Both the position numbers and the translations under genes were made by a program. This document shows, in pieces, positions 1,554 through 40,385 of a DNA stretch of 64,000 nt. The notes under the pieces were generated by a model that was not told the origin of the DNA, ran no database searches, and saw only the letters and a list, made by a program, of their open reading frames with translations. Source of the stretch: Guillardia theta CCMP2712. Lineage: Eukaryota > Protista > Cryptophyta. How positions within the stretch are numbered: the stretch's first letter is position 1; each line of letters opens with the position of its first letter. The stretch is taken from positions 816,541 to 880,540 of the forward strand of contig NW_005434655.1 of NCBI RefSeq assembly GCF_000315625.1, read 5' to 3'.

Positions 1554-2355
1554 AAAGATGGGAGGGGAGAGAGAGGAGGAGGGAAAGAAGGGGAAAGAGG
1601 AAAATGCCAAGTGCAGGTGGAAGAAGCTCGAGAAGCAGAGCAATGCACAACGGAGCAGATGAAAAGATAAGGAGGACGAGGACGAGGACGAGAAGGACGA
1701 GGATTAGGACAAGGATTAGGACAAGGAGGACGAGGACGAGGACNNNNNNNNNNNNNNNNNNNNNNNNNNNNNNNNNNNNNNNNNNNNNNNNNNNNNNNNN
1801 NNNNNNNNNNNNNNNNNNNNNNNNNNNNNNNNNNNNNNNNNNNTGAAGCAGATGTTCTTTCCGCCTCCGCTTCTTCCTCGTCTTCCGCCATTGCACCTGA
1901 CGATGACGCCGTCGTCGACGCCGCGGTGGACGAGGAGGAGGAGGAGGAGGAGGAGGACGAGGTACCTCAGCAGCTAGCCTGAAGAATGCTCTCTCATTGC
2001 AGTAGTACAAGGTGATGAGGTGGTTTGTCATCCACTCCCTCCACATGAGCGCCAACCTCTGCAGCGTCCACTCTGGAAACATTCTCAGGCGCTATGCTGG
2101 AAGACGAGGAAGAAGAGGAGGAGGAAAGAAGATGAGGAGGAAGGGACCTTTGAGAGCGAGGACGGGAACGGCCACAGCGATGATGAGAAAGTAGAGGAGA
2201 ACAGCACCCCAGAACCTGCCTTCCTCCTTTTTGGAGAGGGCCTGCCAGACTTACAAGGTCAGGGAGCTGTTGGACAGAGGAAGAGGATCAGAACCGTGAA
2301 GAACTCTCCCTGCTGGAAGTTGAGTTTGACAAGGAGGGAAGTCGTGCCGAAAATC
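290..2355 (-). CDS. ABC transporter, ABCD/ABC_membrane_2 family half transporter; multi-exon, partial (3' end runs off the window, 5' end unresolved)
   Basis: Spliced translation: IFGTTSLLVKLNFQQGEFFT / ALSKKEEGRFWGAVLLYF / LQRLALMWREWMT / IDNPDQRIVSDIESFT...EADLRFNLVRVRENAESIAMY (EAA-like motif). Walker A GPSGAGKT at ~521-549, then FFLPQKVYMPMGSL. Confidence 0.92.
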
Positions 2356-2390
2356 TGAGTCGAGGTGAGGAAGACGATGGGAACGCAGAG

Positions 2391-2447
<57 letters not shown>

Positions 2448-2453
2448 CACGTG

Positions 2454-2488
<35 letters not shown>

Positions 2489-2720
2489 TAGACAGAAGGA
2501 AAAGGATAGGGAGAAGGAAGAGGAGGAGATCAGCAGGAAGGAGGCAAGGACGAAGGATAATCATTTTAGTCTTGAATATGGACAAGATCATGAGGGAGGA
2601 GGGCGAGGGGAGGGAGGAATGAGCTGAAAGCACATCCCATGATGGTCTACAAGTGACTCTTGACCTCCCCAGTCTGCAGCAAAGCATCAGCTAGCCACGT
2701 GCTGGAGGTGAAGGAGGAGA

Positions 2721-5700
2721 ATGAAATCCTGGGTCAGTGCCCTCATCCTCTGGCTCCTCTTCAACATGCAGGCTGCACCCGAGGCTCGGAGTGACCCTGG
2801 ACATGTCGATGCCGCAAGAGCTCCCTGCGCTCTTCGCTGGAGACTTGAGCAGCTGGTCTTGAGAGGAGGGGTCGATGATCAAAGGCTGCAGCAGACATGG
2901 AAGGACGTCAGTGTCATTCCTCTCCCCTCTTTCGTGCCTGAGAGCAAGTTGGCAGAATCTTTCCCCACTGGACCAAGAGCTCAGGAGGAGGAAGAGGAAG
3001 TGGAGGGAGGCTGTGCAAGAAGAAAGTTCTGACTTCGTTGAAGAGAGCAAGGAAAGCCATTCAGTGCCGCCATAGTTCTCCTTCCTGTCCTGCTGACGCG
3101 CCTCATGCAGGATCTGGACCCTGATCGCCCTGATGCCTACGTGGAGCCCGAGGTGACTAGTCAAGACCTTGCGCGAGCTCGCTGCTGATTCCTCTCAGGA
3201 GCCTGTTGAGAATGAAGACTTCGATAGAACCGGTATTGTAGTCCCTCCCTCCCTCCCTCCCTCCCTCCCTCCCTCCCTCCCTCCTCTCCCTCCCTCCCTC
3301 CCTCCCTCCATCCATCCNNNNNNNNNNNNNNNNNNNNNNNNNNNNNNNNNNNNNNNNNNNNNNNNNNNNNNNNNNNNNNNNNNNNNNNNNNNNNNNNNNN
3401 NNNNNNNNNNNNNNNNNCAATTCAGGGTCGAAAGACCAGGAGGAGGAGGAGGAGGAGAGAGAGAGGAGGAGGAGGAGGAGGAGGAGGAGGAGGAGGAGGA
3501 GGAGGAGGGGCGACCGACGGCGCAGCCTGACCGCAGCGACAGCATTGGAGGTCATGCCGGAGTATGAGGAGGAGCCCTTGACAGGCAAGCTGAATGTGAG
3601 GTTGAGAGACAAAGTACTTGTGTTCTGTGTGCTGCCTTCTGTCCTCTGAACGCTATCGCAGCTCACTTTCATGTTGACTAAGAACGATTACAAGAAGGTG
3701 CTGCCACCAGTCCTCTGCCGCGTCACCTGCTCGTTCACCCTGATCTCCTCCTCCTCCTCCTCCTCCTCCATTCCCTCTACGCGCCTCTTCTTCCTCCTCA
3801 ACTTCTTCTCCTCTCCACCGTCTCCTCCTCTCCAACTCCTTCCCCCTTCACTTGTCCACCTCCTCTGCACCTCCTTTTTCCTTCCACTCTTCCTGCTCCT
3901 CCTCAGCTGCTCCCCTCCCTCCTCCTCAGCACCTCCTTCGGATTATCTTGGTGTGATGTTCAATTGAAACACGTCTCCAGCGACTGTCATACTCGGAAGC
4001 TATCGAGGTCTGCGTTCCCTCCTCCTGATCCTAACCTTGACGCTCCAACAAACAGGTCGAGCGAATATGGCAGAACAATCGAGCTGTCCTGCAATCTCAG
4101 AGGTAAAATTCGCTCTTCTTATTTCATTTCCTCAGCTCCTAATTCGGCCACATCAGCGAATCAGACCACGACAACCGAAACTTGCTGCCGTGGGAGCAGG
4201 TGAGGAATCAGATGATCGTGGAGACGGTGGAGTGAGGATGGGATGGTGTAGAATCAGGGGGTCGATGCAGAGAAGGGCGGCGACAAGGAAATCGGGGACA
4301 ATGGTCCTCTCTTGACCATGCAGGAAGCAAGCCAGATGCTTGACGAGGCTATCGAGTACGTCAGGGAGCGAGATCGAGGTCTTGAATTGTGGGCAGAGGA
4401 GACTAGAAACTGACGGAAAAGCTGTCAAGCTCGACTGATGTACCGCGGCGAACTGTACAAAGACAGTGACGGTGAGCGTGGTTGAGTTGTTTCTGCAAAG
4501 GTGACTGTACTGCAGATGTAGAGATGAAAGGGATTGAATACAAGGGTGAGGCATGAAATGTTAGTGTCGGAGTTGACAACCAAAAGATAGACAACAAGAA
4601 CGACAACAGACATCACCATCACATTCTTGACAACAAGAGTCAACACCAAGTTCACTACCTCAAGGGACAAGAGACCATGAGCAACACAAGTCTACAAGAT
4701 GCCTTGATGGCTCCCGAGGACCCCGAGCCAACGCCGAACCTGTTCGATGACTACGAATACTGTGATCTGAAATCATGCATGAGATATGAAGCCCTGAAGG
4801 CTGTTGCAGACAAGGAAAAGAAGAAACGAATCGACTCCGACGACGTATATATTGTGTCTTGTTCATGATCATGTTTTCATTGGCTATGATGTCTTCTTGG
4901 CCATCATATCTGTATCATCCAAGATGTCTTCACTAACCAAACATGTCTCTTTTCATCAACAAGCAAGACATCAGTCGTGTCTTGTGATATTTTTGCTCCT
5001 CAGTCGATTCGAAACCTCGTTGCCTCTGAACTCTTGAACGTTTCTTCCACGACAAGTAAGATTTCTTACGGCGAGCTTGTCTCCGGGGAACCGCCGTAAG
5101 TACCTCCTCTCCTGTCCTTGTTTCCTCCTCGAGATTGAATTTGATTTCTTCATCATGTCACTTCTTGTGACCGTGAAATTCTGAACGCAGCGACGAATGG
5201 CCTTTCCGACCTGGAAGGAGGACCAAGGATAATATTTTCGACCACGAGATAGACGAAAATCTCCTGGAAGTCAGTTGGACCTGGTGTTGTGCACGTTTCT
5301 CAGCTCACTGCAGAAGTACACCCTCACGTGGGACAAGATCTTGAAGAACGAAGAGTTCTGGATCGAGAGGATTAAGAGGTCTATGGACAGGGAGGTTTGT
5401 CCTACCTCTCCCGTGCTGCCCGTGTTGTCACCCCTGGGTTCTCATGACCATATATGCTGATGTGAATTTGAATGAGAGATTCTCCTTCCCTTCACTCTCC
5501 TTCCCGCTAGTCTCTTCCCTTTCTCTCTCCTCTCCTCCCCACCCTTGTCTCCTCTCAATGCTCTTCCTTCCCCCCTCTGCTTCTCTTCAATCCCCTCCCC
5601 TCTCCTTCCCCCACCTCCTCTCCTCCACCCTGACCGCTCCCTGCTCGCCGCAGTACTTGGAGACTCTCCTGCAAGTGCGGGAGAAGTGGGGATTCGTCCC

Positions 5701-8157
5701 AGTGCCTGACGTCGATGTGGAGGGAGTGACATGCTGGAACTCGACTGTTCCTCCTCCTCTGCTCCCTCCTCCCTCTCCAAGGCGAGACGACCTCATCCTC
5801 CCCGATGCATTCAAGACGTTCGCTGCTGCTGTCTGGGCAGCGAAAGATGGAGAGAGAATCTTCTTGAGGGCTGGAAACCACACATGGAAGGGAGCAGAGT
5901 AAGAGGAGGAGGAGAAGGAAGAAAGTTGGGAGGGGAACACGGGAGGAGGAGGAAGAGGGAGGAGGAGAGATTGACAGCTGTTCTCCGCAGGTCAAGGAGT
6001 GACCTCGCCATCCAATATGACGGGATCTTTATGAACTCAAAACTCCCTCCTCGAATCATCGAGGTGCTCTTTGGCATCGTCAGCGTCCCCAACTGTGAGC
6101 TAGATCCCTTCCTCCTGGCTTCTCCTGACCTTCCTCCTCCTCCAGTTCTCCGTGCAGAACCGACGCTGAACCTCCTGGAGCTCGAGCAGGCAGGGCAGGA
6201 GGAAAGTTTCTGCTTGCATGTCACCGGAGAGGAAGGAGCGAGACTGTGCGGGAGGATGATGCTTCAGGCCAACTCGGTCGGCTCCTTCCTGGGGGTGCGA
6301 CTGGCGATGGAGAACAACAACAGCTACCTGGAGGACGAGAAAGACGATGCGGTTTACATGAATGCGATAGAGACGAGGGGGGGGCCATGGCTGTTCCAGC
6401 ACTGCGAGCTCAGAGCTTGCGGGGCCGTGGCCCTGTGCGCGGCGAGACGATCGCTGACCAAGATACGGCAGAGCGTGATAGGAGGGGTATCTCACCAGCG
6501 GGAACGTCACTCGGGAGGAGGAAGAGCGACGTGCGGGCTGCTGGCAAGGGACTTTGCCAGGGTCGTGCTGAACGAAGACACGATCGAGATGACAGGGACC
6601 GTTATCCTACCTGCGCTGCATGCGGTCGGGATGAGCCAGGTCTCCGTAGACAGGAGCGTGTTCCAGCGTAACATTCACTCGGTCGGCGTGCTGGACAGAG
6701 CGCAGGTGAAGCTCTCGAGCTGCTTCCTGCAGAACAACTTCCAGGGCGCGTTCCTCGCAGTGAACAAGCAGGGGGAGGTCGCACGGGATGACGAGCTGGG
6801 GGAGGAGGAGAGAAGGATGGTGGAGGTTATGCTGACAGAGAGGGCGAAGAAGGAGCAGGGGATGAGAAAGTTCTTCCATCAGTTCCCCATCCACTGGGAC
6901 AAGTACAGGAGAGCATGGACGAGGGTCCCGTCGCGGCCCACCAGGAGGATGGACCCCCTGCTGGGGAACGTGACAGACGGCTGGCTCTACGGCCTTCCTG
7001 GATGGACCCATGGAGTCCCCGACAGCGTGAAGGAGCGAGTGGAGGCACTGATGGACGCAAGTATCGCCTCGTCCTCGAACCTGCTAGAGCTCTCCTCCTC
7101 CGTCTTCAAGTGGGGCCAAGTCGGCTGCCCGCTGTCCCTCCGGATCGCCAACGGAGATGCGGAGGGTGACCAGCTGACCATCAACTTCAACGGAGGCTCC
7201 CACGAAGCCTCGCTGCACGTGCGGGGCTGCAACGTGTCCGGGGCCCTGTGGTCCACCAACGATCGTCCGGGAGTCTTCAGGAGCGAGGACGTGCTGGAGA
7301 TGCAGGACGTGTGGAAGGAGACGTTCGTTGAGGGGCCCTACCGCATGAACTGCTCCCACATGCTGGAGCAGTTTGGGTTCAAGTGGGACGAGAGCATGCG
7401 GGACTGGCTGAAGCCCGTCCGGCGAGCCGACGGCTCCTACGTGTTCGTGCGATGGAACGAGACGAGGTTTGAGGACGAGGCTCCTGGAGGGTATCCGGGG
7501 ACACCGGAGGACTACCCGATGTTCGACCCTGAGACAGGAGCAGAGATCTTGCCGCTGAACGAGACGGTAGTGAAGAGGAAGTCTATCCCCTTCCTCAACT
7601 TCGAGACCGGCGAGCCCCCAAAGGCGATCGCCGAGCACTGGAAGAAGGAGAAACGCATCATCCAGCTGAAGGAGCTGCTGGAGCTGAAGAGGCTGCGGGA
7701 GGACCCCGAGTACTTGACCATGAAGCTAGGTGAGCTCGAGCATGCTCCTTCTGGAGGGTTGCTGAGTCGAGGATGCAGCAGGGGATCCGGAGCCTGAGGA
7801 GGAGGGGGTGGGGCTGAAAATGAAATACTACAAGACAGACGCCGAGCGCCGCGTCGCCTCCATGCGCCTCCTGGAGAAGTTCTTCAACCGACCCTACCGG
7901 GGCAAACTGTACGTGTCCACTACCACCAACTCCTCCTCCTCCTCCTCCTCCTCTTCCTCCTTCTCCCTCCTCCTCCTTCCTCCTCCTCCTTCTTACTCAC
8001 ACCCTCTTTCTCCTTCCCCCTCATTCCTCCCTTGCAGAGAGGCTGGCAACGAGGAGCCTATCACCCTCTACGACTTTCAGCCCAAGGTCAGGAAGCATTT
8101 CCTTGGGGTCAGAAACGCAGCTGACCCCGACGCCCGCGTGTACTATTACTGTGTTTA
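2721..8157 (+). CDS. Large multi-exon protein: signal peptide + LVLRGG leader, C-terminal right-handed parallel beta-helix (pectin lyase-like/CASH) region
   Basis: GT-AG exons 2721-2906, 2956-3063, 3111-3152, 3199-3232 and further small exons. FAAAVWAAKDGERIFLRAGNH is a typical beta-helix cap. The long exon ~5991-7729 has repeats (FQHCELRAC, VLNEDTIE, VDRSVFQRN, LSSCFLQNN). It could be two genes. Confidence 0.6.
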
Positions 8158-8485
8158 AGTGAGTAAAAGTTCAACACCGTCAGTCAACATCGGCGGCGAG
8201 TCAGGCCCGGACCGGGCCTGCCAGCACTCCGGCAGTCACTGTTGCTGCGTTCGGCCTCAGCCCGGCCGACTCAGCCGCTCAGTGCCAGCGGCCCGGCGCT
8301 CCGAAGTTTGAAGCCGGGCCGGGCTCGGTTCAAGTTCGCCGAGTCGCGGCAGCGAGTCCCGGTGACGGTGAAAGGAGGGAATGAGGGGGATGAGGTCTTC
8401 ACGTGTGCTGGGGAAGTTTGGACCATCGAAGGAGAGGAGGAGAAGGGAAGGGAAGGGGAAGGAGAGGAGAGATGAGGGGGAGACA

Positions 8486-17884: not shown

Positions 17885-20800
17885 TTTTACTCCTCGAACA
17901 TATGATTCTGGAAGTCCGTCCCTGCCAACCAGCCCGTCAAGTCCTCCTGTCTTCTTCACCTCCTCCTCCCTCTCCTCCTCCCCCGCTTCCTTCCGCCCTC
18001 CCTCTCTCCTCCTCCCTCCTCTCCTCCCTCTCCTCCTCCCCCTCTCCTTCTCTTTGCCTTCCTTCCACTCATCTTCCCCCTATCTGCTTTCCTTTCCCCT
18101 TCCTGCCCTTCTCCTCCCTCGCCTCTTCCTCCCACTCCTCCCGCTACTCTCAACCCGCTCTCCTCACCGTCTATCTCGTCGTCTCCATAAAGATATTCCT
18201 TCACCAGCCAGTGGGGACGATGAGGCTGAAACATCCAGTGAGAAGGGAGGAGGAGGAGGCAGAAGGAGGAGGAGGAGGAGGAGGAGGAGGAAGGAGGCTG
18301 ATCTATTGCATGATAGATGGGAAGCGAAAGAGATGATGTTGAGAAGGAACGACGGAGGAGAGAGAAGGGATGGATTGACGGCAGGGGGCTAAAAGAGGAG
18401 GAGAGAGGAGGGAGGAGGGAGGAGGGAGGAGGGAGGAGGGAGGAATCACTTTCTACCTGAACAACATAATCGGTGACCAGAGACCTTGCGTACTCCTCCT
18501 CGTCGCTGCTGGAGTACCTGGAGGAGGTGGAAGGTAAGCAAGAGAGAGGGAGGGGGGAAGGACGGGAGGGAGGGAGGGAGGGAGGAAGGATGAGGGAGGG
18601 AGGGAGGGGCAGTTGCTCATACTTCGCCTTCCCATCTGAGAAAGAATCGTCGGGGATGTTACCCAAGTCAAGATCCTCGTCATCATCCACCAGCCCCAGC
18701 CGCAGCCTGTTCCTCTGCTTCCTCGACCTCCCCAGGTGCTGCGAGCCCGGCAGGTCCCGCACGTCGAAGGATGCGTCCCTGTGGTGATCTGGGCCCAGCA
18801 GCTGCTCGTGACCCTTCCATGCTCTCTTGCAGTACTTGTCATACAGCCTCTCCCCCGGACGATCCTTCTCCTTCCTCTCCTCCCTCTCCAGCACCCCGTA
18901 GCCGAAGAAGAGGTCGAGCTTCAGCGGAGGAGGAGGAGGAACGACCCCTTCGCTGACCTTCCACTGCTCAATCAGCTGGTCCTCCTTCACCCGCGTGATG
19001 GGGCTGAACGGAGAGCCGAATCTCTTTATCTTGTTCGCTATCCTCTGCTCGCACCCGAACGCCAGGTTGTGAAACAATCCCGACGCTACTTGTATCCTCC
19101 TTCCGAACATCCCTACGACTGGCACCGCCACCATGCAGTTCCCATGGTTCCCCTGCCCCGTCTGTCCCATGTCGCTGCTTCCCATCACTCGTACTTGCCC
19201 GTCAGTGGTGACCACCAGTGAGTGCTCCGACCCGCATGCGATGTCGACGGCGCGGTCGAGCACAGTCTCGTCCTCAAGACCCGCAACGAAGGCCAGCTCC
19301 TCGGGCAGGAGGTGGTCCGTCTCTGATCCCTCCGACCACCTCAGCCCCAGCTGCCCCAGCTGGTTCTTGCCGAACCCGAACAGGGTCCCGTTGGTGAGCA
19401 GGACGAGAGTGTGTTCGTCCCCGCATGCGATTTTTCTGATCTCGCAGCCGTCAAAGAAGCTGACCCTCGTCATCCTCCTCCTGTCCTCCTTGTCCCCTAG
19501 CCCCAACTGCCCGTTGCTGTTGCTCCCACACGCGTACAGTCTCCCTCCTTCCGTCGCAATCATGCAATGCAGCGACCCGCACGCCACCACTGTCGCTCTC
19601 GCCGCGCCTCCTTGCTCCTCTGGCAGCTCGATCACTCGAGGTTCGCAGAACATATCATAACCCTCTTTACACCCGCCCGCCCCTTCCACCACCTGTATCC
19701 CCATCCCCAGCTGCCCCTTTCTGTCCCATCCCCATCCCACCACCTTCCCTCCCTCCAGGATCGCGAGCGAGAAGTCCCATCCCGCGGCGACGCACAGCAC
19801 GTTCTCTCCGCTGAGCGCTGGCACCAAGCAGGGCGACCGATCGCTCATCCTTAAGTCCGTGCCTCCCCTGCCCAGCTGCCCGACCTCGTTGGCTCCAGCA
19901 GAGAAGAGCATCCCCCTCCCTGTCCCCTCCTCCTCCACCAGGAACAGCGTGTGGAAGAGCCCGACAGCGATCTGAAGGATGCTCGCCCCGTCCAACCCAC
20001 GGACGCGGCAAGGAGCCGGCACGTCGTCGGGATCCACATCGCAGACACTCTTCATCTCCTGCACCACCTCCTTCCACCTGCTCCCCAGCATTTCCCTCGC
20101 CTCCTCCTCGTTCAACTCGTCCAGGGGAGACTGTCCCGAGGCCTCGTGCCTCAGCCCCAGCCCCAGCTGCCCGAACTTGTTCGACCCGAACGCCAGCACG
20201 ACGTTGGGATTGTGCAGGCAGACGAAACTCTGCATGCCTCCTGCGTAGATGGCAGAGATCCTGCCATGAAAGGGAGTACCTGCTCTGAAAAGGGGATGTG
20301 AGATCGCAAAAGTCTGTTCAGCCTCATAGGGCAGTCCCAGCTGTTTGTCCAGGTTGCTTCCCCACAAGAGCAGCTGCTCCTGACACTCTCTCATCTCCTC
20401 TGCTGACTGTGGGTGATGAATGTTTCTCCGCACATACGCTGCGTTCCTCTTCCTTGCCAGGTATTCGATTTCAACCTGCCAACACACCCTGAGTGAGAGC
20501 AGGGCAGGAGGAGGGAGAGGAGAGGAGAGGAGAGGAGAGGAGAAGGGAGGGGAAGGGAAGATGGGAGGAGGGAAGGGGAGGGAAGGGGTGGGGAGGGGTG
20601 GAGGAGAACTCAGAGGACCAGGTGAGAAGACAAGGGTTGAGGGGCAGGAGGACAAGGAGGAGGTGGTCTGACCATCTCCAAGACAGGGGGGAGGGTGTCG
20701 GGGATGTAGGTCATGTCAACGACGTAACCGTAGTCAGGTCGCTTCTGTATGTAGCAAGGCATCTCCACCGGCCCGTCGCCTACCCATGGATCGATTTCTG

Positions 20801-22403
20801 ACTCCCCGTCCACGTAACGCTCCCTCGCTGCCTCCCTCCAGGGCTCCTCGACTCGCTTCTGGGTCTTGAAGTAGTCCATGTTCGGCATGTTCTGGTGCTT
20901 CAGATTCACTGGGATGTGGAAACCCTCGACCTCGATGCTCTTGTCCTTGCCTTGAATACTCTGAGAGATGTTGTACATGAACTCCTGCTCCTGTCTCGCC
21001 TCCTCCTCCCTCTCCAACTTCTTCGCATGGGCCATACTCACTGACCGCCGGTACTCACGGGACTCTTCGTCCGCCTCGTCATCCTCCGGGACTCTCTTGT
21101 CCAGCCCCGTCGATCGGATCAACTCCGGTATATGCCGTCTCTGCCACTCTGCCATCCTCGTGTCGTTGTACTTGAGGAACACTGAGCATCTGGACTCGAC
21201 CATGTCGATCAGCTGCCTCGCCATCGTGTGCAGGACCCTCCAGTGTTTCGTCACTTGCGCAAAGGTTCGCAGCTGCTCGAGCTCTGGGGAATTGCTCTCA
21301 TTGAACGAGTGCTCCTTCAGCAAGTTCTCCTTGCACATGAGCACCGGGTTCACTCGCTTGTACCGCTTCGGCAGCATCCTCCCATACTGATCGCGGTCCT
21401 CAAACCCTGCAGCAGAATCTTCCGAAGCGGGGAGGTCGAGGTCGTCGAGACAAGCTTGCAGTGGGTCATCTGTGCTCTCGTCCTCCTCCTTCCGCATCTG
21501 CGCTATCCTCTGCTTCAACGCTGCTTCCTCTGACCGACAGTTCTCACGCTTCGCCACCTCCATGCAAATCTTCCTCGCAGTCTCTCTTTGCGGCAGGTTC
21601 TCCCCGCCCACGTCCTCCAACAGCTCGAGGAAGACCTCTGCTCCTCTCCTCTTGACGTCAATCGTTCCTTGACTCCTCGCCGCATCCTCCTGCTCTTGAG
21701 CAAACTTGTCCGCCCCCGGCCCATGCCACTGGTCCAACGACACAAGATCCTCCGGCCGTCCAATCAGCCCAGGAATCTGTCGCACATCCTCCCCCCACTG
21801 CAGCGGTCGCACACCAGGGCCCCTCCTTTCGCTGGTCTGTAAGGAGTTGAAGAAGTCTGCATTCTCTTCCAAGATCAGCTGATCCTGCTCTTTGAGCCTT
21901 TTATCATAGATGGGGATCCGGATCGCGGGTGGACCTTTGGCAGGGTCGTCCTCGATGCTATCAACCTCATAGATCCCTCCAGGAGCGTACTTGGGCTCCT
22001 CCTCCTCCTCCTGCGCTAGGTTCTCGTCGCCAACCATGCTCCCCGTCCTCAATATCTGCTCGGAGATGACCTGATGCAGTTCTGCCTCGGTATCCTCCAC
22101 CATCTCCTTCTTGGTCTTGCGGTGCTTCTTCATCAGCGTCTTCTCACGGCTCATCCTTGCCTTCCTCTCCTCCTGCCCCTGAATCATCTTCATCTCCACC
22201 TGACTGCTGTACGACCCGAATGCCCTCGAACCACCTCGGATCCTTTGCAGCGGCGGAAGCGACGAGAGGAGAACTTTTGTGAAATCTCCTCTGCAGCTGT
22301 GAACCTTCTCCTCAACTGTCAAGGAATGTGCGATGGAGGAAGGATGAAAGCACATTTGTAGAAAGAGGAGGAGAAACAAGGTCAAGAATGTGGCAGGCTT
22401 CAT
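17885..22403 (-). CDS. RCC1-repeat (beta-propeller) protein with N-terminal signal peptide + LQRIRGG leader
   Basis: Multiple RCC1 repeats (FGSNKFGQLGLG, IAVGLFHTLFL, VACGSLHCM, IACGDEHTLVL, IACGSEHSLVV). ATG at 22403 with hydrophobic MKPATFLTLFLLLFLQ. Intron at ~20476-20671. Confidence 0.88.
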
Positions 22404-36685: not shown

Positions 36686-38678
36686 ATGAACAGAGCCATT
36701 CTTAGAGCGATCTCGCTGGGATGTGCTCTGCAAGCTGCTGCTGCCTTCGTGATCCCTTCAAGACTTACACTTGCCACCGGTCACCTCCCTTGCCATTCTA
36801 AGGGACTGTGCAATCTTCATCTTGCCCTGAAAGCAAACAAATGTACCATCTCTCGACAAAGAGGTTTACACCATCTTCCTCGTATGTCATCAGGAGCGTC
36901 CAACACAGGCAGCATAGCTGGATTTGGCGAATCGGGGGGTGACAGTGTTTCAACGGGTCTTCAATCAAATAGCGCAGCACGCAAGAAATCATTCCTCCGA
37001 GTCCTGTGGGACTTCACCAGACCTCACACCATAATCGGTTCGATCTTGTCTGTCGTGTCGTTGCATCTGTTCGCGCTGACAGCACCGGGTTTGAAAGCTT
37101 CGCAGCAGATTGTCAGGTCATGTTGATGGTTCCCCTCAGGTGTCAGCATAATCAACTTGTCTGCTTTCATGGTTGCACTCACCTGGTCACTTGTGTGCGC
37201 CTCCTTGGTGAATCTCTTCGTCACGGGGCTGAACCAGGTCCTCTTGCTCCATTGGTATTGTAGTGATTGATCTCGGTCCAGATTTATGATGTAGATATTG
37301 ACAAGATTAACAAGCCGTACCTGCCCATCCCAGCGGGAGAATTGTCCCTGCAGAAGTATATGCAGGTGATCATGAAAAATTTAAGATCTGAAATCTTTCA
37401 CAGTGCAAAAGTCATCGTACTTGTTTCCCTGATTCTTGGGATTGTAAGTTGCATCCGAATCTCACGATCCCCCTTACTTGCCAATTTTCCAGCTCCCGAC
37501 CATCTTGTTTTATCCGTTTGACAAGATCCCGCTCCTAGCTGGTCATATCAGAGACGTAGGAGAGAAAATCTGAGACTGACATGATTCCAGTCACCGGAGG
37601 ATCATGCGTACTGGGTACACTTTACTCCATGCCTCCCTTCCGCCTCAAACGCTTCCCCTTACTGGCTGCCATGTACGCCTTGGTTCAGGATTACAATCAA
37701 TCTTAGAGCTCTGTTGTCGCAGATGCATCATCGTTGTGAGAGGGACGCTGGTCAACCTTTCCTTCTATGCACACACTGCAGCTGTAAGTGCTTGGCGCTA
37801 GCGAACAACTTCTCCGCTCATTGTGGTTCGTTTTGTGCAGATCCTGGGCACGGAGATGCTTCCTGCAAGGAGTTGGATCGCTTCTTCATTCTTCGCACTG
37901 TTCGGATGGTACTTGTTGATCGTGCTTGCCTCGTTGACTCACCCGTCCTCCTACCAGCGTCATCGCGCTGATGAAAGACGTGCCAGATGTAATGCCCGTC
38001 CCCTTGCCTTGCTCATCTCTTGTTCCACTCCTCCGCATTCCATTCCCTTCCTCCTCTATTCCTCCTCTACTCCTCCATTCAAAGTTATGGGCAGGTCAGT
38101 GGCGATAGAGAATTTCAAGTCAAGACCCTTTCTGTTCGGTTTGGATCTCGCACGGTACTTGTTTTCGACTGCATTCTTTCAAGGTTCTTTCTTCTCATCT
38201 GTCACCCTCCCTCCCTCCCTCTCGTCTCTACAGATTTTGTCTCTCGGAACTGGAATCCTGTCCGCGAGCTTCACTGTGGCTTCTCTCTTCTGTCTCTACC
38301 ATAGCGTACTTCTCACAAGTGATCGTTCTGGTCGAGAAAGCACCAAGCGCTGACCCAACTCTGCTAGATCCGGTCTTCAAGGCCTTGCGATTCGTCGTTG
38401 CTTTGTTCTCAGGGGTAACTCATACTTCCCGCCTTCAGCTTTAGCTTGCTTGACCTTTGGCTGTGCCAGATCGCGGCGGTCTGGGTTCACAAAAGCAGCA
38501 GACTTCTCCTCCAAGAAAGTGAACAGGACGAAGAGAAAACATTCAGCGAAAAGGCGTACAGGTATTGGCTCATTGCAAACCCTCTCTTGGTGTTCTTAAT
38601 GTGTTTGCCATCAGCTACTACATGGATCTGTGGAAGTTATTCTACGCGTCATATCTGCTTCTTCCCTTTGCTGTTTAA
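36686..38678 (+). CDS. HPT: Homogentisate phytyltransferase (UbiA family, tocopherol synthesis), plastid-targeted
   Basis: FTRPHTIIGS, GLNQ|IYDVDIDKINKPYLPIPAGELS, YSMPPFRLKRFPLLAA, KDVPD, and C-terminal LWKLFYASYLLLPF match HPT/VTE2 better than HST. Leader ...QAAAA|F is an ASAF-type bipartite signal. Confidence 0.88.
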
Positions 38679-39004: not shown

Positions 39005-40385
39005 ATGAGGTCGGCGCGGGGGCGATGCAGTGAGAGCACGAGAACACCTCCAACTTCTGCTCATGCTACTCATGCTGCTCCTGCTACTACCTATCTTCTT
39101 GCCTGCTTCTTGCTGTCTTTCACTGCCTCCAAGAGTGAAGAATCCTTGCATGGGATCTCTTTGACCGGCACGAGCGGCAGGGCAAGCCGCGGTCAAGCGA
39201 TCCTCCTCCCTCCCCGTCGCCTTCTCCTCCATGGCGGGAGAGACGATGATTCGGAGCCTCCTGGAGAGTTGCTGGAGTCGTTGAAGCGAGAAAACTCACA
39301 CCTGAGGGGCGACGAATGGTTCTTTGTTGAGAAGAAGGAAGGCAGGTACCAGGCGAACGGCCCTTGCGATGGCGACTGGATCATCGGGCAGATGGAATTC
39401 AATATCATCAGTCCTGAAACATTCATGTGGCGACCTGGCATGACGAGCTTTGAAAGGGCCAGCGCTCTCTCTCGGTTTCTACCCACCGAGGATGTGCAAA
39501 CTGCATCGTCATGCTCTGACCGCGGGTCCTCGGCGATCTCCAGGGCCTTGCCGGATGAAGCTGTCGTGAGTGATGAGGAGACGAAGGAGGTTGAAGCCCA
39601 GCAGGAGCTAAGAGGGTCGAAGAGGAGGAAGTGGAAGACGAGGAGGGTGTACGTTGAGAAGCAGCCGCCGAGAGGAGAGGAGGAGGGACTGGAGCAGGAC
39701 TCCAACTACATCCTGTTCGAGGACGAAGAGCCATCCCTCTGCAGGCACGAGGAGGAGGAGGAGCTGGGAATCGGACAACAAGTTTACCAGGAAGAGAAGA
39801 GAATGGAGATGCTGGACGAGGAGAGGAGCGAGAACGGGGGCATGATAGAGGAGGAGAGGAGCGTGAACGGGGCCATGATGGAGGAGGGGAGGGGCGAGGG
39901 GGAGATGAAGAAGAAGCAGAATTTCCCGCCGCTCTTTCCCAACATGAGCTTGTACAAGAACTTGATACGCATACCTCAGCCCTATGAATCCTTCCCGACG
40001 GACCACAAGGAGCTGCGCGAGATAGGGGTGATCTACCTCCTGAGATAGTAAAGTAGGCCTCCTCCTCCTCCTCCTCCTCCTCCTCCTGCTTGCTCCTGCT
40101 TGCTCCTGCTCTTGCTGTCCCTCTTGCTGTCCCTCTTGCTCTTGCTCTTGCTGTCCCTCTTGCTGTCCCTCTTGCTCTTGCTCTCGTTCCTGCTCTTTCT
40201 CTTCATGCCACTCCTGCTTGACTTTCTATCGTCTACCATCACCTTCCTGTACATCGCCGACACCTACAAGTTCTGGCTCCTTGTCCTTCTCTCCTTTCCT
40301 GCCCCGTTCTCACCTCCTGCTCCTCTCTCCTACTGCCTGAGCATGCAGAGATTCTTGTCGTTTATTTCATGCAACCACCGATTCT
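39005..40385 (+). CDS. GYF_2 (DUF4339)-like domain protein with hydrophobic leader + LLLHGG; 3' end uncertain
   Basis: EWFFVEKKEGRYQANGPCDGDWIIGQMEFNIISPETFMWRPGMTSFERASAL (39314-39478) fits the W..GP....I...T.VWxxGM pattern. Confidence 0.6.

Follow-up and report, generated by a model that had tools for sequence, protein, structure and literature searches.

A conserved ubiquitin-tail-like hexapeptide closes putative presequences of Guillardia theta and of related cryptophyte and uncultured sequences

Results

Three leaders in the window share a signal-peptide-like start and a Gly-Gly end

We analysed a 64,000-nucleotide stretch of Guillardia theta CCMP2712 (contig NW_005434655.1, positions 816,541 to 880,540; hereafter the window, whose own numbering is used throughout) in which three unrelated predicted proteins, here called instances 1 to 3, begin with a leader composed of a signal-peptide-like start, a spacer and a hexapeptide ending in Gly-Gly. 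The window consists of nuclear DNA of a eukaryote, interrupted by 100-N scaffold gaps and containing microsatellites and numerous very short introns. Two of its proteins have their best database matches (74% and 63% identity) in EukProt entries of the cryptophyte Hanusia phi. An initial annotation made from the letters alone had described the three leaders as a signal peptide followed by an LRGG-type motif, and we recovered all three layouts at the same places. The features of the leaders, together with those of a control gene that carries a different kind of leader, are as follows (an arrow marks a presumed border or cut within a sequence).

2721..2777, + strand: instance 1, signal-peptide-like N-terminus MKSWVSALILWLLFNMQAA, with an uncharged hydrophobic run at residues 3-14
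2778..2852, + strand: instance 1, transit-peptide-like spacer of 25 residues with 0 Lys and 4 Arg
2853..2870, + strand: instance 1, hexapeptide LVLRGG (within EQLVLRGG, 2847-2870), inside exon 1 of the spliced transcript
22347..22403, - strand: instance 2, signal-peptide-like N-terminus MKPATFLTLFLLLFLQMCF, Met at 22403
22230..22247, - strand: instance 2, hexapeptide QRIRGG, shared unchanged by Hanusia phi
39005..39220, + strand: instance 3, Met at 39005, long n-region, hydrophobic run ATTYLLACFLLSFTA (residues 27-41) and spacer; a weaker signal-peptide call
39221..39238, + strand: instance 3, hexapeptide LLLHGG, then RDDDSEPP
36686..36748, + strand: control, HPT-like (UbiA-type) gene, signal peptide MNRAILRAISLGCALQAAAA then Phe; a stromal-type leader with no RGG

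Signal peptides were judged from uncharged hydrophobic runs of 8-15 residues near the N-terminus. Such a run was present in all leaders, including those of the homologues described below, with long n-regions in some homologues and in instance 3, where the n-region is unusually long at 26-28 residues. The EQLVLRGG of instance 1, which the initial annotation had picked out, is followed directly by VDDQRLQQTWKD and falls within the first exon of a transcript spliced at GT..AG; the motif is therefore present in the mRNA on the + strand. Exon 1 runs 36 nt past the Gly-Gly to the first donor, which rules out an exon-end or splice artefact. The last three codons of the motif differ among the instances (AGA GGA GGG in instance 1, CGA GGT GGT in instance 2, CAT GGC GGG in instance 3), so the shared signal is at the protein level and a DNA-level motif can be ruled out.

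Spacers measure 25-62 residues across the leaders. The leaders are poor in Lys and rich in Arg, with 5 Lys versus 39 Arg in nine leaders compared to 46 Lys versus 51 Arg in the 40 residues that follow. The residue just after the Gly-Gly is S, G, A, V or R and never Pro. The likely signal-peptide cleavage would expose Pro or Ala in instance 1, Lys in instance 3 and Asn in a metagenomic homologue of instance 1 (locus L006); the site in instance 2 is ambiguous.

The hexapeptide is conserved where the leader meets the conserved protein

The Hanusia phi orthologue of instance 2 (transcript product P0005) has the same start and carries (L/M)QRIRGG at the same position. Between the two proteins, identity is 25% over residues 1-52, complete (6 of 6 residues) over QRIRGG and about 63% over the mature part. 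A profile of the instance-2 family, run exhaustively against 1.84 billion representatives, brought up five further, distant homologues (E 1e-8 to 6e-6) in metagenomes and run assemblies. Each has a hydrophobic start, an unalignable spacer and an RGG hexapeptide directly before the conserved region. Their junctions read HLQLRGG↓SSRS, GLHLRGG↓SRAT, LLHLRGG↓SGRA, LFRLRGG↓SPGQ and SLVLRGG↓APRA. One more relative, the only new homologue from a scan of metagenomes of the Joint Genome Institute with a 4-sequence alignment, has LLSLRGG↓GGSR. In the 7-sequence alignment of the family, R62, G63 and G64 are invariant and, save for one Leu in the hydrophobic N-terminal run, are the first invariant columns; the residues past the Gly-Gly are also fairly conserved, as S-x-R-A/S. 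An ESM Atlas look-up of one homologue of this family returned no usable match.

One homologue of instance 2 (P0014 / P0040, L004:303-1883) shows a tandem duplication of the junction, reading AMLVLRGLAPKVGQSRL.ARR and then ASLVLRGGAPRAVESRQMARR. The upstream copy is degenerate, LVLRGL, having lost the second Gly, and an intact LVLRGG stands downstream.

For instance 1, the homologue on locus L006 is about 45% identical and has the start MAVGMLLLFCAGIPAAS, a stretch of 26 residues and the junction QCLRGG↓GGGGGGPRA, with conserved RRRxKxWxEV and DRPDAYV blocks. At L006:8603-9445 the LRGG continues straight into a poly-Gly tract (LRGGGGGGGGP). Instance 3 has a sole database relative (P0007, 83% identity), which keeps the motif but offers a weak test of conservation at this level of identity.

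The motif is thus conserved at the border of leader and mature protein in two of the three families. A transit-peptide-like extension is present in that the spacers are unalignable between homologues and conservation begins at or after the motif, and the division into a leader and a mature region made in the initial annotation falls on this border of a diverging and a conserved part. Taken together, Guillardia, Hanusia and several uncultured relatives share a conserved ubiquitin-tail-like hexapeptide that closes presequences with a signal-peptide-like start.

The conserved positions match the tail of ubiquitin and NEDD8

Ten leaders from the three families were tabulated by position, counted back from the presumed cut.

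Position -1: G in 10 of 10
Position -2: G in 10 of 10
Position -3: R in 9 of 10, H in 1 of 10
Position -4: L or I in 10 of 10
Position -5: variable
Position -6: L in 6, Q in 3, F in 1

The consensus L/Q-x-[L/I]-[R/H]-G-G corresponds from -6 to -1 to ubiquitin L71-R72-L73-R74-G75-G76 and also to the NEDD8 tail. The likeness to a ubiquitin tail, first suggested from single sequences, thus extends over six positions and ten leaders. The tail of instance 3 is LHGG, with His at -3; LHGG is the C-terminal tetrapeptide of Urm1 and not that of ubiquitin. It may be a coincidence, or His may be tolerated at -3.

Upstream of the hexapeptide the likeness ends. When the spacers were aligned locally with ubiquitin residues 1-70 and scored against shuffles, the alignments were no better than the shuffles (p 0.32-1.0). 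A leader derived from a decayed ubiquitin domain is ruled out by this lack of similarity.

Several known motifs were compared with the hexapeptide and set aside. The PEXEL/TEXEL/RxLR host-targeting motifs, which would stand 20-60 residues behind the signal peptide as RxLxE/Q/D, RRLxx or RxLR, find a counterpart only in the RRLLL of instance 3, and the invariant part that the leaders share is R-G-G. A site-1-protease (RxxL) reading fits one instance at most, or fits without the defining features.

In the window, the motif is confined to the leaders among real coding frames

Motif frequency was counted in the six-frame open reading frames (ORFs) of at least 100 codons, 39,568 residues in total. 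The pattern [LIVM][RH]GG occurs six times, three of these being the leaders; of the other three, one belongs to an intron read-through, one to an antisense frame and one to the edge of an ORF, so that in the real coding frames of the window the pattern is confined to the three leaders. The stricter [LIVMFC]x[LIVM][RH]GG matches instances 1 and 3 only. A background of about 8e-5 per residue gives a chance of about 0.5% for one match in the 60-residue zone behind a given signal peptide.

Conservation outweighs such counts as evidence against chance. That the motif meets three N-terminal regions by chance has in its favour that it is short and was defined post hoc, with degenerate positions and very many windows scanned. 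With a background of about 3 per 39,568 residues outside the leaders and the motif kept in two independent families despite unalignable leaders, this reading is effectively refuted.

The control gene carries a stromal-type leader without the motif

The initial annotation had set the leaders against an HPT with a signal peptide plus Phe and no RGG, and this gene indeed begins MNRAILRAISLGCALQAAAA↓F and lacks an RGG. It is the only signal-plus-Phe protein in the window. The HPT-like gene (36686-37126) has a textbook cryptophyte stromal junction, LQAAAA↓FVIPS, and a long Ser/Gly-rich transit peptide. None of the motif-bearing leaders has an A↓F junction of the kind seen on this control; they end in L-R-G-G and not in the diatom stromal motif.

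The cargo resembles cytosolic and nuclear proteins

Pfam searches of the mature parts found RCC1 repeats, a weak GYF_2 match (E 0.0014) and long Lys/Glu-rich segments, and saw no Cys-rich or extracellular-type modules. The RCC1-like domain in the RCC1 ORF of instance 2 is matched at E 1e-68. As read from these domains, the cargo appears to be of cytosolic or nuclear type and fits periplastid or nucleomorph cargo. The label of beta-helix protein that had been given to instance 1 found no confirmation: its C-terminal domain has no Pfam match and no PDB-sequence profile match below E 0.05, and AlphaFold2 run on a 5-sequence alignment of this domain returned a mean predicted local distance difference test (pLDDT) of 38.

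Gene models of instances 1 and 2

Contigs from public runs were placed on window positions 2300-8200 as transcript evidence for the instance-1 gene. The gene features beyond the leaders are as follows.

2671..2906, + strand: instance 1, exon 1, comprising the 5' untranslated region and 62 codons, with a GT..AG splice to 2956; found in transcriptome-like contigs from two runs
2956..8175, + strand: instance 1, rest of the gene, from transcript contigs, with the C-terminal domain on a large exon inside
17956..22229, - strand: instance 2, mature protein, a charged region of about 520 residues, then a probable intron, then an RCC1-repeat exon

The instance-1 gene starts with the ATG at 2721, just 5' of which lies an in-frame TGA (2709-2711). 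A second transcript contig covers a segment ending at 5095 and then 5191-5269, 5314-5392, 5652-5898, 5991-6094, 6146-7727, 7777-7908 and 8038-8175, and the conserved C-terminal domain lies on the large exon 6146-7727. The leader exon and the large downstream ORF had been proposed to form one gene, and this proposal holds, because both transcript contigs share a single continuous reading frame once spliced and because the homologous locus L006 has the same order of leader, RRRxKxWxEV block, DRPDAYV block and large conserved domain.

Between 2956 and 4810 the exons of this gene are very small (many of 27-47 nt, the tiny exons of the gene as a whole measuring 27-172 nt) and are separated by introns of 44-59 nt; one intron of 283 nt lies at 3696-3978. 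Intron 3049-3109 is best read as GA..AG, with no GT..AG or GC..AG available within the 4-nt ambiguity of its borders. A DNA-like contig (X12 record 6, 2608-3124) matches the assembly across it, and the intron may be genuinely non-canonical. The assembly gap at 3318-3417 conceals about 152 nt of exon, and a (CCCT)n run adjoins this 100-N gap (3236-3417). Because about 152 nt in the transcript contigs are unmapped, with a loose end before 3561, at least one exon is missing from the assembly at the gap. Contigs of three runs, the DNA-like X12 included, link 5537 back to 3910 with 14 extra letters, which points to a repeat-mediated alternative arrangement or to an assembly difference.

In instance 2, the 597-codon ORF that begins with the leader is probably spliced into the RCC1-repeat ORF, with a predicted donor ATG↓GTCAGA near 20672, an acceptor near 20474 and an intron of about 200 nt.

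Discussion

A candidate maturation site at the end of a proposed periplastid-type presequence

Because it is placed exactly where an unalignable leader becomes a conserved protein, the hexapeptide is most simply explained as a maturation site, and from its position in the alignments we consider it probably cleaved. We tentatively propose that it is a conserved functional processing site that ends a periplastid-type bipartite presequence and would be cut after Gly-Gly by a ubiquitin-tail-specific protease, a combined reading to which we give slightly less than an even chance. The signal peptide would take the protein into the endoplasmic reticulum (ER) lumen around the cryptophyte plastid, and the fast-evolving spacer, as a transit-peptide-like segment of the non-aromatic type, would let it cross the periplastid membrane and reach the periplastidial compartment or the nucleomorph. 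The ubiquitin-tail mimic would then serve as the maturation site, the leader being removed after Gly-Gly by an enzyme that reads a ubiquitin- or NEDD8-like tail, such as a deubiquitinase or an Ulp/adenain-like cysteine protease.

The destination in this proposal follows the rule described for cryptophytes, in which a signal peptide with a transit-peptide-like region that lacks an aromatic first residue leads to the periplastid compartment or nucleomorph and Phe at +1 leads onward to the stroma (PMC5443833, PMC6105332). Where these two papers discuss such signals, they credit periplastid-type bipartite signals to Gould et al. 2006 and Gruber et al. 2007. The layout of the leaders and the type of cargo favour the periplastid compartment as the destination, if only by a narrow balance. 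The end of periplastid leaders has so far been estimated only from the onset of conservation (PMC3101018), and a positive net charge is reported to be unnecessary for crossing the periplastid membrane (PMC3017844).

Our full-text literature search, which left subscription papers partly outside, found no paper linking RGG or LRGG with cryptophytes or Guillardia, with targeting to the periplastid compartment or with signal peptides of plastid proteins, and no description in the searchable literature of a conserved motif at the C-terminal end of periplastid leaders. The RGG leader end thus looks to be undescribed, and a prior description is possible given the incomplete coverage of the literature.

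Which enzyme would cut after Gly-Gly

To our knowledge, the periplastid compartment is the only non-cytosolic place with a ubiquitin system. Two invariant Gly residues combined with Leu or Ile at -4 and Arg at -3 are what is demanded by proteases whose tight active-site cleft takes up a ubiquitin-like tail. Deubiquitinases, Ulp/SENP8-like enzymes, the adenovirus protease and the coronavirus PLpro belong to this group, and such a cleft suits an invariant Gly-Gly. An enzyme of the deubiquitinase or Ulp type is a possible candidate for the leaders, although we lean somewhat against it. SELMA, the translocon derived from ER-associated degradation (ERAD), has its own E1, E2, E3 and Cdc48, and a diatom deubiquitinase, ptDUP, has been proposed to mature imported proteins (PMC3101018). 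Deubiquitinase cleavage and a coupling to SELMA stand as coherent hypotheses on this background. In the most specific form of the proposal, cryptophyte periplastid or nucleomorph presequences would end in a bare mimic of the ubiquitin C-terminus, and the ERAD-derived import machinery would remove these presequences with a protease of the deubiquitinase type, for example an OTU-type enzyme replacing ptDUP; this version we regard as doubtful.

A number of observations weigh against the proposal. The leaders contain no ubiquitin-like sequence 5' of the hexapeptide and no beta-grasp fold, and their spacers are shorter than 70 residues; a ubiquitin fold is normally needed by cellular deubiquitinases. 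Instance 3 has His in place of Arg as well as its long n-region, leader 1, unusually by the standard of stromal transit peptides, has four acidic residues, and one possible cleavage site in the Hanusia orthologue of instance 2 would expose Phe. The metagenomic homologues carry no taxon that ties them to complex plastids, and the genes beside them proved not to be diagnostic. Finally, ptDUP (USP7/Ubp15-like) is reported by a phylogenomic study to be absent from cryptophytes, where an alternative enzyme has been suggested (10.1101/2025.03.31.646294), so an enzyme different from ptDUP would be needed.

Other explanations

The strongest competitor, which we nevertheless consider unlikely, is a real presequence site for another class of protease, either an M16 metallopeptidase of the stromal or mitochondrial processing type, which would recognise an Arg two or three residues before the cut, or an enzyme similar to trypsin or thrombin that would cut the Arg-Gly bond, for which LVPR↓GS is the site of comparison; the likeness to ubiquitin would then be convergent and incidental. 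The nearly invariant Arg at -3, the invariant hydrophobic residue at -4 and the absence of a ubiquitin fold before the motif all agree with such an enzyme, but both Gly residues are invariant in 10 of 10 leaders, which known M16 or trypsin-like specificities do not demand, and the His of instance 3 would be unacceptable to a trypsin-like protease. At -2, the processing peptidases of mitochondria favour Arg and those of plastids a hydrophobic residue, and the diatom stromal site is Ala or Ser, then Leu and any residue before the cut, with Ala, Ser or Met after it, and not L-R-G-G (PMC3774753).

Somewhat less likely again, the hexapeptide could stay uncleaved on the mature protein as a recognition or sorting element, for example a retention signal or a site at which a component of the translocon's ubiquitin system docks. 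That the motif is conserved at a constant position demonstrates a function but does not demonstrate cleavage, and the S-x-R-A/S conservation past the Gly-Gly in the instance-2 family also speaks for this reading. Against it, the motif in two families coincides exactly with the point where unalignable sequence gives way to alignable sequence, a classic mark of the end of a presequence, and the degenerate LVLRGL upstream of an intact LVLRGG is what would be expected if only the last site matters.

The cargo might instead never reach the periplastid space, the leader being a signal peptide and propeptide of ordinary or regulated secretion (for example of extrusome or periplast proteins) with the RGG as a propeptide site. 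The signal-peptide-like start is the only part of the route that is directly seen, and the lack of a taxon for the metagenomic homologues leaves room for this explanation. We hold it to be improbable given cargo with RCC1 repeats, a GYF-like segment and Lys/Glu-rich regions and with no Cys-rich or obviously extracellular modules.

What a defined leader end would mean

How periplastid proteins are matured and how they are separated from stroma-bound cargo is an open question in complex-plastid biology. A defined leader end would give a sequence rule predicting the periplastid and nucleomorph proteome of cryptophytes and would indicate a specific class of maturation enzyme in a lineage reported to lack ptDUP. 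It would also make directly testable the long-standing question of why the import machine retained ubiquitination. If the presequence is removed by a deubiquitinase-type protease of the translocon, its removal would be tied mechanistically to the translocon's ubiquitin cycle, and the enzyme would be a targeting-signal peptidase of a kind that no organelle is known to have. The leaders would also show how nature can use a minimal ubiquitin-tail site in the absence of the ubiquitin fold.

Comparison with known systems

The tails of ubiquitin, NEDD8 and ISG15 (LRLRGG / LALRGG) share with the leaders Leu at -6, Leu or Ile at -4, Arg at -3 and Gly-Gly at -2 and -1, and in linear ubiquitin-fusion precursors, as in the leaders, the tail stands directly before a protein that a cut after Gly-Gly would release. 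The tails are processed by deubiquitinases and Ulp-type proteases. In these proteins a beta-grasp domain precedes the tail, whereas the leaders have a putative signal peptide and 25-62 unrelated residues. The adenovirus protease, which cuts at (M/L/I)xGG↓x, and the coronavirus PLpro, which cuts at LxGG↓, act on linear peptides and need no ubiquitin fold; cleavage after xGG without the fold is therefore enzymatically feasible. These clan CE and papain-like sites resemble the leaders in their hydrophobic residue at -4 and Gly-Gly within a linear peptide. Unlike in the case of the leaders, the enzymes concerned process viral polyproteins, and none is tied to these leaders.

Bacterial double-glycine leaders, cut by C39 peptidases of ABC exporters, likewise end in Gly-Gly and have hydrophobic residues at -4 and further upstream. 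They differ in being prokaryotic, 15-30 residues long and served by a dedicated ABC transporter, with no signal peptide and no Arg consensus at -3. Such a leader is ruled out here by eukaryotic, spliced genes with a hydrophobic N-terminal signal.

The stromal transit-peptide site was mapped by N-terminomics in a diatom; diatom stromal transit peptides begin with Phe and are nearly free of acidic residues, and the residue at -1 of their cleavage site is small or charged (PMC3774753). Their cleavage motif, like the hexapeptide, ends the second part of a bipartite leader and has a hydrophobic residue just 5' of the cut, but it follows a different consensus and has no Gly-Gly.

The periplastid bipartite signals of cryptophytes and diatoms resemble the leaders in layout, with a hydrophobic signal, a poorly conserved extension and a protein of cytosolic or nuclear type, and they contrast, as do the leaders described here, with a signal-plus-Phe stromal leader such as that of the HPT-like gene. 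Unlike the periplastid signals described in the literature searched, the leader end seen here carries an invariant R-G-G within a ubiquitin-tail-like hexapeptide.

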